The notes: generated by a model from the sequence alone, not told the origin. Positions 22,458 through 26,163 are shown, numbered from the stretch's first letter. The stretch: 64,000 bases of DNA from Basidiobolus meristosporus CBS 931.73 (GCA_002104905.1 MCFE01000109.1:1-64000); one strand, 5' to 3'. Made by a program: numbers and translations.

Positions 22458-23423
22458 CTAGACTACGAAACAAGAGGAATAGTCAGGCGGGCAGTCGAGT
22501 TTTACTGCGTAATAGCTGGGCAATTGGTCCATACCATTCAGGGCCTCCGGTGTGGAGCTATTGCTGGTGTTAGAGACAATATAGATCGGAAGAATCGACA
22601 GAATACTTCGGAGTTCACCATCAAGCTCAACTTGAATCCTGGCATATAGTATGTGATAGACTTTCATGTAGGGTGTTGTACAATGGAGATGGACTTCCTT
22701 TGGGGATTTTGGAATGGGAATACTGAGAAAGCTACTGTCCGAATTGCTCTCGATGGCTTTCGCACTGGTTTGCAGATGGCTTCTAACCACATCCCCTTCA
22801 GTGACGATATTTTTGTGGATCTTTTTGTACTCAGTTTTCTCGTCTAATCCTGCCCACACGCCCAACAGTCTGCACTTGCTACTAAGTAGGCGATGTTTGA
22901 AATAGATAGGGATACTGTCGCCAGGCGTGTATTCTGGACAGGGGATGATGATTTCGTAATCCACCAAATCGTTCCATGTGGCTTCTAGATGGGTATTGTA
23001 AGACATACATGCGAGGGGGTCGATGTCTCTACAAATATAGACGTCCTTTTGGGCGGTGATCTTGGGCCAGAAAAGCGAAGTCTCCATCGCTGCTTTCAAG
23101 CTGTACTGGATCTTTCCATAGCTTGCAGTGGCAGTCTCGGGGAGGTCGGCAGGAAGGGGAAACTCGAATGCGAATGTATGTTGTCCGGAGGCTTCCTCCA
23201 GGGAAAAGTGCCGCTTCTGTTCGAAAAGCACCTTGCGTGTAGCTTGTAGACCTCTGTTCAGTACGAATTCCCCACGAAAGGTTAATGAGATGTGCCGAGC
23301 ACCCAAGGAGGATGAAGAGACGAGGAGTACTTTCCCCCGGAGGAGGAACAGGGAGTTGGTGTCATCGTAGACACTCTTGTGGAATGTGTCTTGTTCTAGT
23401 TGAATCTCAAATCTTGGGCTCAT
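22458..23423 (-). CDS. Alpha-arrestin (arrestin-N/C) with C-terminal PY motifs
   Basis: FAFEFPLPADLPETATASYGKIQYSLKA arrestin-N signature; LPSY and PPDY Rsp5/Nedd4-binding motifs. Start chosen at MSPRFEIQL. Confidence 0.85.
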   Translation of the reverse strand: MSPRFEIQLEQDTFHKSVYDDTNSLFLLRGKVLLVSSSSLGARHISLTFRGEFVLNRGLQATRKVLFEQKRHFSLEEASGQHTFAFEFPLPADLPETATASYGKIQYSLKAAMETSLFWPKITAQKDVYICRDIDPLACMSYNTHLEATWNDLVDYEIIIPCPEYTPGDSIPIYFKHRLLSSKCRLLGVWAGLDEKTEYKKIHKNIVTEGDVVRSHLQTSAKAIESNSDSSFLSIPIPKSPKEVHLHCTTPYMKVYHILYARIQVELDGELRSILSILPIYIVSNTSNSSTPEALNGMDQLPSYYAVKLDCPPDYSSCFVV

Positions 23424-23975
23424 TGGTGAAAAGTACGACGAGGAAACAGCAACCTGGGGATTTTTATAGGCTTGGTTGATGGGAAAAGCAGTCCCGACGG
23501 GCCAGCATTCAGGCAGGTGTATGATGAAATGCCACGCAGGAACTGCCAAATGGAGATTAGCGGAACGGATAGCTAAATCATTAGGTCGGTCTCACTGTGC
23601 ACGACAAGGACGGAGCGATCTCAATCCTAAACACATTTCCGGATTTGGACACGATAACGACCAAACCCAAATTCGGTTAAGAGTGAAGTTGTTCTATCCA
23701 GTGGCACTCCGCATGTGCCAATCCCATCAACATCCCTCAACATCCCTCGACCAAGGTTCAGCTATCGCCGCTCAGTTATGGTTTGATGAATGTTGTAGGG
23801 GAAGTGCATATCATACTCAGTTTAATTGGAAACAGAGGTGTAATTCAGGCTGAGTTCCAGTAATTTCAGGCTCCAATCTGGATAGAGAAATCAACATTCA
23901 TACACTTCACAACTATAAAAAAGATCCGCCCCTCCTGCTGGGCGCCAAATCTCTTTCCCTCGTTGATTCCTAACT

Positions 23976-25079
23976 ATGGTTCATAAGGCTCTGGTTCAAG
24001 GCCTTCGCCTGGGCTCGAAGTTTGAGCCCGGAATCCTCATATTCTCCCGCGGGGTGTGTAGCTTGCTCATCTTTGCCATTTGGCTTGCATATTCGCTAAT
24101 ACAGTTGAGGAAAGTCCTAAATCCGCCGATTGGTTATGCAAATGAGGTGGTTCCATCCAAAATGTATGTTCCTACCATCACTGTTTCCGGCGCAAACGGC
24201 GAGTTGGCTGGAGTTGACCTATTGGTAGGCGGGTTTTACAACGACAACTCCACCGGTTTGAAGCCCATTGGAACTGTGCAAAGATACGATGATGCTAAAA
24301 CCGGTTCAACTACGTTTACCATCACACCGTATACTGCTCTTCGATTCGGCCTTGTGACTTCAGGCCAGGGCCGAGTTGTAAGTGGGGTCGCATTTGCTCT
24401 CTCAACCAACCAGACGCTTCCATACTTCCCCAGAGTAGGCGTAGTGTCTTCCAACACGGCTACAATAAACGAAACCATTTACTTGACCAGCCTGGATTTC
24501 AACCGGCACGCAAGAATTGGCATAGCTCAAGAGATTACCCAGGATCTACAGGGACGCACATGGACTGCGTACACCTCCCAGACGCAAGCGCTGTCGCTGC
24601 TATACTTCACAAACTTTCAATATGCCGGTCTTCTCCTCCCACTCAACGACCCCAGCAATGGTGACGATGAGTGGATAACGCAGAAGACAACAATGAAGCC
24701 GACATACACCTGGCTTGACCTGCTAAGTAGCATGAGTGGTACATTGCCCCTCGTGACCGGGGTGTATTACGTTTTGTTTGGGGTGGGTCGAGTGCAACCA
24801 TGGGGGATATTTCAAGCATACATTCTACGTCAACAGGTGCTATCCCAGGTTGATGAGCCCGTGTTGACCATCCCGGCGTATAAAAAAATCGGAAGCAAGA
24901 TCTACACAGACGACCAGCGGCCTCACGACGAAAAGAACCAGGTTGCCATCCAAATGCCGATGCCATTCGATTCGGACGTGCAGACCATCGAGGCTAGGAT
25001 CGCGCAGTTGGAGGCGTTCCAACAAAGAATGGAAATCTTCTATCTGAATCACCAGCTGTTCGAAAGCAAGAAGTTGTGA
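23976..25079 (+). CDS. Two-TM membrane protein with about 200-aa loop, unknown family (DEG/ENaC-like motifs)
   Basis: Intronless 367-aa ORF, hydrophobic segments at about aa 19-46 and about 248-270, conserved-looking LFGxGRxQPWGxxQ, C-terminal coiled coil. Confidence 0.8.
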   Translation: MVHKALVQGLRLGSKFEPGILIFSRGVCSLLIFAIWLAYSLIQLRKVLNPPIGYANEVVPSKMYVPTITVSGANGELAGVDLLVGGFYNDNSTGLKPIGTVQRYDDAKTGSTTFTITPYTALRFGLVTSGQGRVVSGVAFALSTNQTLPYFPRVGVVSSNTATINETIYLTSLDFNRHARIGIAQEITQDLQGRTWTAYTSQTQALSLLYFTNFQYAGLLLPLNDPSNGDDEWITQKTTMKPTYTWLDLLSSMSGTLPLVTGVYYVLFGVGRVQPWGIFQAYILRQQVLSQVDEPVLTIPAYKKIGSKIYTDDQRPHDEKNQVAIQMPMPFDSDVQTIEARIAQLEAFQQRMEIFYLNHQLFESKKL

Positions 25080-25305: not shown

Positions 25306-26163
25306 TTACACTGGGTTGAAGAAGAGGTCCGTGTGGACGGGGGTTTGGGGTGAGAGCAATTTATCAAAGATGCACTGCGTTCGCAGGTCCATGAACTGAT
25401 CACTATCGGTGACTATCCTGAGGCTATTGCTTGCGCAGCCAGCGGGCACATCCGGGATATTCAAGTGGCAGTTTTCATCTAGTAGCGGCTTCTCCTTGGG
25501 ACATATCACGTTCCATTTCTCCAGGTAGCGTAGCTCGTACATCTCCCACACAATGATCTCAAATAACTCGGTGGAGAACTCCACCATGGAAAGCATGCCA
25601 CCCGAGCCCTCCGTGGTCATTGCTCGCAGATGGTGCACCAGGCTCATGGATTCAAACCGACTGCGCACTAGACCCACCGTCATTCGTTGGTGGGTGTGCT
25701 CCTCCTCGCATAGAGTCAGATATTGAATCAGGAAATGCTTCATGTAGCGTTCACTCCATCTCAGCCGTAAACACAGATGCTTAAACACCTCCACGATGGC
25801 CTTAGGCTCCCAATGATTCGTCAGAAACTTCACGAACCGGGCGGTTTTGTTTGCTCTCTCTCCGATCACCAAGGTGGTGGTCAGCTGCACAATATTGAGT
25901 ATGGGCCAGTCCTTCGTCACCTCGGACACCAGAGAGGCGAATTTCGTGTGACCAACTCCCCAGTGGTAAAATAGCTTGATGAGGAGCTCAGCAATCTGCT
26001 GAATTGGCCAACCGTTGACCAGCCATCTGATGGCTGACGGGATGGATTCGGAATAGGAGTCGGACAACTCGTTGATCAATCTCTGCAAGTAATAGGCAAT
26101 GTAGTCTAGATTCTGCTCATTACGGATCCAACTGTAGAACTGGGTATTATATCTACTGTCCAT
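25306..26163 (-). CDS. Hypothetical helical-repeat protein
   Basis: 285-aa ORF with periodic Trp and amphipathic helices; no family recognised. Confidence 0.7.
   Translation of the reverse strand: MDSRYNTQFYSWIRNEQNLDYIAYYLQRLINELSDSYSESIPSAIRWLVNGWPIQQIAELLIKLFYHWGVGHTKFASLVSEVTKDWPILNIVQLTTTLVIGERANKTARFVKFLTNHWEPKAIVEVFKHLCLRLRWSERYMKHFLIQYLTLCEEEHTHQRMTVGLVRSRFESMSLVHHLRAMTTEGSGGMLSMVEFSTELFEIIVWEMYELRYLEKWNVICPKEKPLLDENCHLNIPDVPAGCASNSLRIVTDSDQFMDLRTQCIFDKLLSPQTPVHTDLFFNPV

Follow-up and report, generated by a model that had tools for sequence, protein, structure and literature searches.

The DEG/ENaC channels (ASIC, ENaC, FaNaC, BRTNaC1 and PDPNaC1; Pfam family PF00858) are built from subunits with cytoplasmic termini, two transmembrane (TM) segments and a large ectodomain, in which a palm and beta-ball core is accompanied by a helical, cysteine-rich thumb, finger and knuckle. 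These channels are regarded as having arisen essentially in animals, with isolated exceptions among protists. A study that specifically searched Fungi with DEG/ENaC queries listed no fungal candidate; those it reported came from holozoans and, beyond them, from a single alveolate and a single stramenopile (PMC10507113). The centipede channel PDPNaC1, which is gated by protons, is a monovalent-cation-permeable homotrimer according to its authors (PMC12714832), and it is taken here as being of the DEG/ENaC type because it ranks together with ASIC, ENaC and FaNaC in the fold searches described below. The subunits of PAC (also ASOR or TMEM206; PACC1, PF15122) have two TM segments and a compact, mostly beta ectodomain that lacks a large cysteine-rich thumb. 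TMEM206 has been reported from vertebrates and one hemichordate only, with no homologues elsewhere (PMC6663466).

In this work we analyzed a gene carried by a stretch of 64,000 nucleotides from the fungus Basidiobolus meristosporus CBS 931.73 (MCFE01000109.1:1-64000; hereafter the window, meaning the whole stretch). The reading frame, the family to which its product belongs, the predicted fold and the sequence relationship with known channels were characterized. From these analyses we consider it rather probable that its product is a subunit with the trimeric two-TM channel architecture of DEG/ENaC and PAC, belonging to an unnamed family found in early-diverging fungi.

Results

The reading frame and its public gene model

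The segment 23976..25079 (+) of the window is an uninterrupted ORF of 367 aa plus stop, and an in-frame stop codon is located 12 nt upstream of its ATG. The nearest database protein is K493DRAFT_406489 from the same strain, identical to the ORF save for a gap of 19 aa; the second nearest is K7432_008203 from B. ranarum, with 61-62% identity. The features of the gene and its product are the following:

23976..25079, + strand: complete single-exon gene, 367 aa plus stop; orthologue of B. ranarum K7432_008203
23976..24053, + strand: cytoplasmic N-terminus, residues 1-26, with the pre-TM1 motif E17-P18-x-x-L21-x-x-x-R25 (family conservation)
24054..24110, + strand: TM1, residues 27-45 (hydropathy; AlphaFold2 helix 19-48, pLDDT >90)
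24057..24113, + strand: 57 nt covering most of TM1, excised as an in-frame intron (GT..AG) by the public model K493DRAFT_406489 and read here as coding
24111..24710, + strand: ectodomain, residues 46-245, with 12 predicted beta-strands, no Cys and three N-glycosylation sequons (AlphaFold2 and sequence)
24165..24185, + strand: post-TM1 strand beta1, YVPTITV, with the near-invariant P66 (36/37), placed by HMMER on the Pro of the DEG/ENaC FPAxTxC motif
24639..24647, + strand: conserved P222-x-N224 closing the penultimate strand, aligned by profile matches with an Asn of PDPNaC1 and FaNaC
24711..24788, + strand: TM2, residues 246-271, candidate pore-lining helix (hydropathy; AlphaFold2 helix 246-268)
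24789..24830, + strand: post-TM2 cytoplasmic signature R272-L-[RK]-P-W276-G277-x-V-Q280-R-Y-x-x-R285, specific to the fungal family
24981..25061, + strand: C-terminal amphipathic helix, residues 336-362, ELEAFxxRxExFYLxxDLF (family motif; AlphaFold2 helix 336-359)

The orthologue of B. ranarum lies at the syntenic locus and consists of one exon. No indel separates the two species in the 19 disputed codons (window 24057-24113), and residues 31-40 (LIFAIWLAYS) are the same in both despite seven synonymous codon changes. In addition, 25 of the 37 family members have an N-terminal 19-mer of high hydrophobicity (KD >= 1.9), the remainder being mostly truncated models. Given the single exon in B. 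ranarum, the absence of indels, the synonymous changes in residues 31-40 and the common occurrence of TM1 in the family, we conclude that the 57 nt are coding and that the 367-aa product is correct; the public gene model wrongly removes TM1 from the protein. When the whole gene was compared with its B. ranarum orthologue, the per-site frequency of differences at third codon positions was about double that at first and second ones, and the codons of TM2 and the post-TM2 region showed 28 synonymous-only changes versus 8 non-synonymous ones; therefore, the gene is real and under purifying selection.

Immediately upstream of the channel candidate there is an ORF of 363 aa on the opposite strand (window 22458-23549, -) whose Arrestin_N and Arrestin_C domains mark it as an alpha-arrestin-like trafficking adaptor; its counterpart in B. 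ranarum lies at L001:1658-2653. The downstream neighbour is an ORF of 285 aa (window 25306-26163, -) without a Pfam match, and a 288-aa gene of B. ranarum (L001:5531-6397) has the matching place and orientation. These syntenic neighbours, the arrestin-domain gene and the 285-aa gene, gave no functional clue.

Layout and topology of the protein

The hydropathy profile reveals two TM segments, at about residues 27-45 and 246-271. Residues 46-245, which separate them, form a loop of about 200 aa that is beta-rich, Cys-free and rich in T, G, L and V; the sole Cys of the protein, C28, is located in TM1. All three NxS/T sequons (N91, N145 and N165) fall inside this loop. Together with the two TM segments, this placement agrees with an N-in/C-in topology in which the loop is extracytoplasmic. 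The topology of the DEG/ENaC subunits, that is, cytoplasmic termini, two TM segments and a large ectodomain, is therefore the one indicated by hydropathy, sequons and AlphaFold2 helices.

Among the family members that have an N-terminus, the pre-TM1 motif is strongly conserved (E in 28/33, P in 32/33 and R in 31/32). The landmarks of TM2 are W246-L-D248 at its outer end, the pair G254-G255 (S-G in the B. meristosporus protein), an aromatic residue at [YF]264, and L267-F268-G269 at its inner end. The amphipathic helix at the C-terminus (336-362) is possibly a cytoplasmic coiled coil.

Distribution and conservation of the family

The 367-aa protein has no match in Pfam or NCBIfam at E<=10, and a phmmer search against the PDB sequences gave only a chance TM match to a peptide permease. 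An exhaustive phmmer search of 1.84 billion representatives retrieved 46 proteins at E<=1e-3, all of them labelled 'hypothetical'. Members are found in Basidiobolus; in the Zoopagomycotina Syncephalis and Thamnocephalis, with several paralogues each; in the Glomeromycotina Funneliformis, Entrophospora, Cetraspora, Ambispora and Glomus; in the Mortierellomycotina Mortierella and Podila; and in metagenome contigs. No member from Dikarya or from outside the fungi was present among the approximately 30 family matches checked for source names, and when the family alignment was used in a word-indexed profile search, the gain was limited to a few proteins of Glomeromycotina, with no named relative among them. 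The protein belongs, in consequence, to an unnamed family of early-diverging fungi (Zoopagomycota, Glomeromycotina and Mortierellomycotina), of which a non-exhaustive literature search found no earlier description.

Conservation is unevenly distributed along the protein. The information content is 2.58 bits in the post-TM2 region, 2.45 in TM2, 2.25 in the pre-TM1 region, 1.68 in TM1 and 1.30 in the ectodomain, as expected for a conserved pore and a diversifying sensor. Residues G269, W276 and G277 are invariant in 43/43 family sequences, and the conserved residues of the ectodomain are P118, F124, Y199 and P222-x-N224. A test for a pore face, in the form of one-sided helical conservation in TM1 and TM2, was not significant.

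Two database entries related to the family deserve a comment. A second Basidiobolus paralogue is apparently split in B. ranarum into the adjacent models K7432_015789 and K7432_015790, which lie on one 3.8-kb contig; one, of 118 aa, corresponds to residues 8-120, and the other, of 245 aa, to residues 135-366. The family match of Entrophospora sp. SA101 is 865 aa long and has FMO-like and pseudouridine-synthase domains as well, and it is probably a chimeric gene model and no real fusion.

Predicted fold

The full-length protein was modelled with AlphaFold2 as a monomer, using an alignment of 37 sequences and no templates. The model (mean pLDDT 76.8) shows both TM segments as long helices, together with about 11 strands and a helix at the C-terminus. 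In a Foldseek search of the PDB with this model, PAC/ASOR/TMEM206 occupied ranks 1-20 (E to 1.1e-9, probability 1.0), followed by BRTNaC1, ASIC1a, ASIC2a and ASIC5 (E 3e-5 to 6e-4). VIA-align, run against 48,161 PDB representatives, placed PDPNaC1, BRTNaC1, FaNaC, PAC, ENaC and ASIC1 at ranks 1-6 (Z 9.4-8.5, about 200 residues aligned); the other high rows were mostly helix-only matches of roughly 60-90 residues, a few reaching about 120, and three further ENaC/PAC rows aligned 126-146 ectodomain residues. In a second look with VIA-align, each of the best 50 rows was DEG/ENaC or PAC. The best six rows and most of those of the second look aligned 194-229 residues, from TM1 to TM2, and the PAC rows of the second look 226-229.

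The ectodomain was folded separately because the Z-scores of the full-length model include the TM helices, and because a shape search of the ESM Atlas had raised ERGIC/Erv41-46 proteins. This second model (residues 46-245, 29 sequences, no templates) reached a pLDDT of 86.9 and a pTM of 0.81, and the five models were alike (84.3-86.9). It contains 12 strands and no helix of >=4 residues; in the ectodomain of the full-length model a single 4-residue turn (74-77) is the sole helical element. With the ectodomain as query, ranks 1-11 of the 48,161 chains in VIA-align were DEG/ENaC or PAC and nothing else: PDPNaC1 (Z 12.6), FaNaC (11.5), ASIC1 (10.9), ENaC (10.7), BRTNaC1 (10.6), PAC (10.4 and 10.3) and ASIC5 (8.9). 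These alignments cover 163-174 of the 200 residues at 3.4-4.2 A, save for one ENaC entry with 138, and the identity in the structural alignments is 9-16%. Erv41p comes next, with Z 7.4, and all others have Z <= 5.6. Foldseek with the ectodomain alone ranked PAC/ASOR (E 5e-8, TMq about 0.5) before BRTNaC1 (5e-5) and Erv41p (7.5e-4). The twelve strands are predicted to form what we take to be the palm and beta-ball core of the DEG/ENaC-PAC fold, following the subdomain names of the ASIC structures, without the helical, Cys-rich thumb, finger and knuckle.

P2X was also considered as a relative and rejected: its entries stand low in the Foldseek list, with TM-scores of 0.12-0.19 and probabilities of 0.13-0.89, and are absent from all VIA-align lists.

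Other proteins came up in these searches. Among named neighbours by language-model features a TMEM206 cluster appears with a score of 0.80, which is a lead only. The ciliate 'transmembrane protein' family Y80K_N (PF27811) is a neighbour both by these features (0.83) and by shape (TM 0.55, 271 residues), and may be another unrecognised branch of the two-TM architecture. In the ESM Atlas, shape matches to the complete two-TM module (TM 0.58 by query) include Mucoromycota proteins some 1000 aa long that are named 'Galactose oxidase' and have Kelch beta-propellers; they are possibly fusions of a channel-like module with a Kelch domain. The luminal domain of Erv41p (PDB 3zlc) aligned over 163 residues of the ectodomain model, which hints at a wider structural class of two-TM proteins sharing the beta-core.

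Sequence similarity to DEG/ENaC channels

When 44 relatives were scanned one by one against Pfam, ASC (PF00858) was the only family matched by more than one of them. The three matches (E 9.3e-4, 2.5e-3 and 3.2e-3; about 17 bits versus a gathering cut-off of 23.6) belong to Syncephalis fuscata P0008 (ASC positions 415-442 of 455), Mortierella polycephala P0045 (ASC positions 390-442) and one further relative; all of them fall on the last strand (beta12) and TM2, and the best E-value is 20-fold better than that of the next Pfam family. The family profile, compared with 177,635 distinct PDB sequences at E<=10, matched PDPNaC1 alone (E 0.29). A broader core profile gave four matches at the same threshold, PDPNaC1 (0.22), FaNaC (0.62) and two others that include only the TM1 helix and its flanks, and a profile of the ectodomain alone gave none.

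The matches to PDPNaC1 and FaNaC, whose E-values are not significant, consist of two collinear stretches each, at the post-TM1 Pro and at the GG of TM2. In the first, the family sequence 'PvPailly' is aligned with 'YFPAITIC' and 'EYPSVTIC', and the family strand has no Cys; in the second, 'PsN...W.D...iGGals' is aligned with the penultimate and last strands and with the TM2 'DIGG' of the channels. The link to DEG/ENaC at the sequence level is thus weak and consistent in direction; homology is unestablished by sequence because the ASC matches reach 17 bits versus 23.6 and the PDB matches have E-values of 0.2-0.6.

These results bear on an earlier note on this DNA, made from the sequence alone, which had described a two-TM protein with a Cys-free, beta-rich loop of about 200 aa and two DEG/ENaC-like motifs. 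The ORF, the hydropathy profile and the Cys count confirm the description, and the quoted motif strings are present at residues 48-71 and 241-262. The second motif had been aligned without gaps with a 22-residue segment of ASIC1; the alignment exists, with 7/22 identities, which taken alone does not exceed chance, given that at least 7 identities are reached in 10.6% of whole-protein shuffles. Only in the light of the fold and of the family profile does the match become meaningful, and both motifs do sit where the family profile aligns with the DEG/ENaC sequences.

Discussion

The predicted structures describe a new, unannotated fungal family with the DEG/ENaC-PAC architecture. By analogy with these channels, a channel function of the 367-aa protein is plausible; a shared fold alone is no proof of such function. 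Homology with DEG/ENaC and PAC is probable, if unproven, and we infer that the protein forms trimers and conducts ions. The more demanding reading, that the family is a fungal branch of a DEG/ENaC-PAC superfamily, truly homologous, made of trimeric ion channels and provided with a minimal, ancestral-like ectodomain reduced to palm and beta-ball, may well be correct, and we hold it as a leading possibility that falls somewhat short of being probable.

The same fold could also support a different activity, with the beta-domain acting in the lumen or outside the cell as a receptor, sensor or cargo adaptor, in a manner comparable to Erv41/Erv46 (ERGIC2/3) of the early secretory pathway. Erv41p is indeed the next-best PDB match after the channels, in both VIA-align and Foldseek, and ERGIC clusters appear in the ESM Atlas shape search (TM 0.45 and 0.50). 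The channels, however, score 3-5 Z units higher than Erv41p and four orders of magnitude better in Foldseek; the protein has no Pfam match to ERGIC_N or COPIIcoated_ERV (PF13850, PF07970) at E<=10; and the weak sequence matches point to DEG/ENaC and none to Erv. In addition, the strongest conservation is found in TM2 and its cytoplasmic flank, which would be unusual if the business end were luminal, and the tail of about 100 aa with its conserved helix is unlike the sorting tails of Erv41/46, which are short. On balance we judge a non-channel role unlikely, while granting it more weight than the explanations that follow.

One of these is that the similarity is convergent or very ancient, the family being an independent fungal one with the same beta-core topology and no specific kinship with DEG/ENaC or PAC. 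That all the sequence-level links to either family are below significance, that the ectodomain profile on its own finds nothing in the PDB sequences, and that identity in the structural alignments is so low are what would be expected in such a case. Against this, the agreement spans the whole TM1-ectodomain-TM2 architecture, and the weak sequence signal falls at equivalent positions of DEG/ENaC in two separate regions; moreover, two of the four PDB sequences matched by the core profile are DEG/ENaC channels, which presumably make up only a small part of the 177,635 sequences searched. We regard convergence as improbable. The remaining explanation, that the AlphaFold2 fold is wrong and the structural matches meaningless, draws on the shallow alignments (29-37 sequences) and on the fold being known from prediction alone. 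It is hard to reconcile with the high pLDDT and pTM obtained without templates, the likeness of the five models, the agreement between the full-length and the ectodomain-only runs and the independent sequence hints that concur with them, and we give it very little credit.

If the protein is a channel subunit, as we favour, a cytoplasmic N-terminus would lead into TM1, a glycosylated palm and beta-ball ectodomain, TM2 and a cytoplasmic tail, and by analogy three such subunits would come together with their conserved TM2 helices facing a central pore. The variable ectodomain would act as a sensor, and its movements could reach the gate through the first and last strands, which are joined directly to TM1 and TM2. 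The pre-TM1 EPxxLxxxR and post-TM2 LFG..RLRPWG.VQRY..R motifs would form the cytoplasmic mouth, and a bundle of the C-terminal amphipathic helices may lie underneath. No clear prediction of selectivity follows from D248, located at the outer mouth, or from R272 and R/K274, located at the inner end.

The earlier note had proposed a minimal, thumb-less channel of the DEG/ENaC/P2X fold, and had suggested an AlphaFold monomer and a Foldseek comparison. These yielded an ASIC/ENaC/PAC-type fold with a predicted palm core, and so the idea of a minimal thumb-less DEG/ENaC-type protein is borne out at the level of the modelled fold by the ectodomain model, VIA-align and Foldseek. The P2X part has to be abandoned in view of its low scores and its absence from the VIA-align lists. 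The assignment to DEG/ENaC itself holds for the fold and fails for the Pfam threshold, the His-Gly motif, the GAS belt and the Cys-rich domains, and by size and architecture the closest analogue is PAC/TMEM206, first in Foldseek, which had not been named.

A multi-copy, conserved fungal family with the same subunit architecture would change the prevailing picture of both DEG/ENaC and PAC. If it is a true homologue, this channel architecture would have originated at or before the common ancestor of animals and fungi, and PAC/TMEM206, an orphan in sequence, would be linked to DEG/ENaC through an intermediate family. Early-diverging fungi, including the arbuscular mycorrhizal ones, would then own a channel class that nobody has sought. 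Sequence annotation misses the family, whose members all carry the label 'hypothetical', and in B. meristosporus the reference model of the gene deletes TM1. The family would also offer a stripped-down model, with about 200 ectodomain residues and no disulfides, of how a palm and beta-ball core is coupled to a two-helix pore, and a candidate channel for the physiology of Zoopagomycota, Mortierellomycotina and arbuscular mycorrhizal fungi.

Of the described families, P2X and Erv41/Erv46 match the fungal protein less well than DEG/ENaC and PAC do. Like the P2X receptors, which are trimeric two-TM channels, it has two TM segments; P2X ectodomains have conserved cysteines, whereas the fungal one is entirely Cys-free. 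It shares with Erv41/Erv46 two TM segments around a luminal beta-domain, and differs from them in lacking their Pfam match, in the lower structural score (Z 7.4), in its long conserved tail and in its conserved TM2.

The DEG/ENaC channels are its best VIA-align matches, and the predicted palm and beta-ball core aligns with theirs at Z 12.6-10.0 over 163-174/200 residues. No other known family gives any sequence signal, and in the non-significant profile matches the Pro of the post-TM1 strand and the TM2 GG fall on equivalent positions. In contrast, the fungal ectodomain is about half the size and has no cysteines and no thumb, finger or knuckle helices. The protein does not reach the gathering score of PF00858 (no match at E<=10). 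The His-Gly (HG) motif that precedes TM1 in DEG/ENaC is absent, EPxxLxxxR being found in its place, and so is the G/S-x-S (GAS) belt of TM2, where the in-register triplet is G262-V-Y and is variable in the family.

PAC gives the best Foldseek match (E 1e-9 for the full-length model and 5e-8 for the ectodomain), and the whole-subunit fold is that of PAC in the 367-aa model (Foldseek ranks 1-20; ectodomain Z 10.4). The two are alike in size class (the solved PAC chains have 251-293 residues), in having two TM segments and in the compact, mostly beta ectodomain without a large Cys-rich thumb. TM2 ends on the inner side in a basic residue, R272 in the 367-aa protein and basic in 43/43 members; it might correspond to the pore-facing Lys related to anion selectivity in PAC, and the positive-inside rule explains it equally well. 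Unlike PAC, the fungal family has several copies in some species and is marked by motifs peculiar to it, LFG..RLRPWG and ELEAF..FYL..DLF, and TMEM206 (PF15122) is matched neither by the 367-aa protein (E<=10) nor by 37 relatives (E<=1).

Because it stays below the thresholds, has no HG motif, no belt and no ectodomain cysteines, and carries its own post-TM2 motif and C-terminal helix, the protein is a member of neither Pfam family; it is built like DEG/ENaC and PAC, resembling PAC in its size and simplicity and DEG/ENaC in its residual sequence signal.
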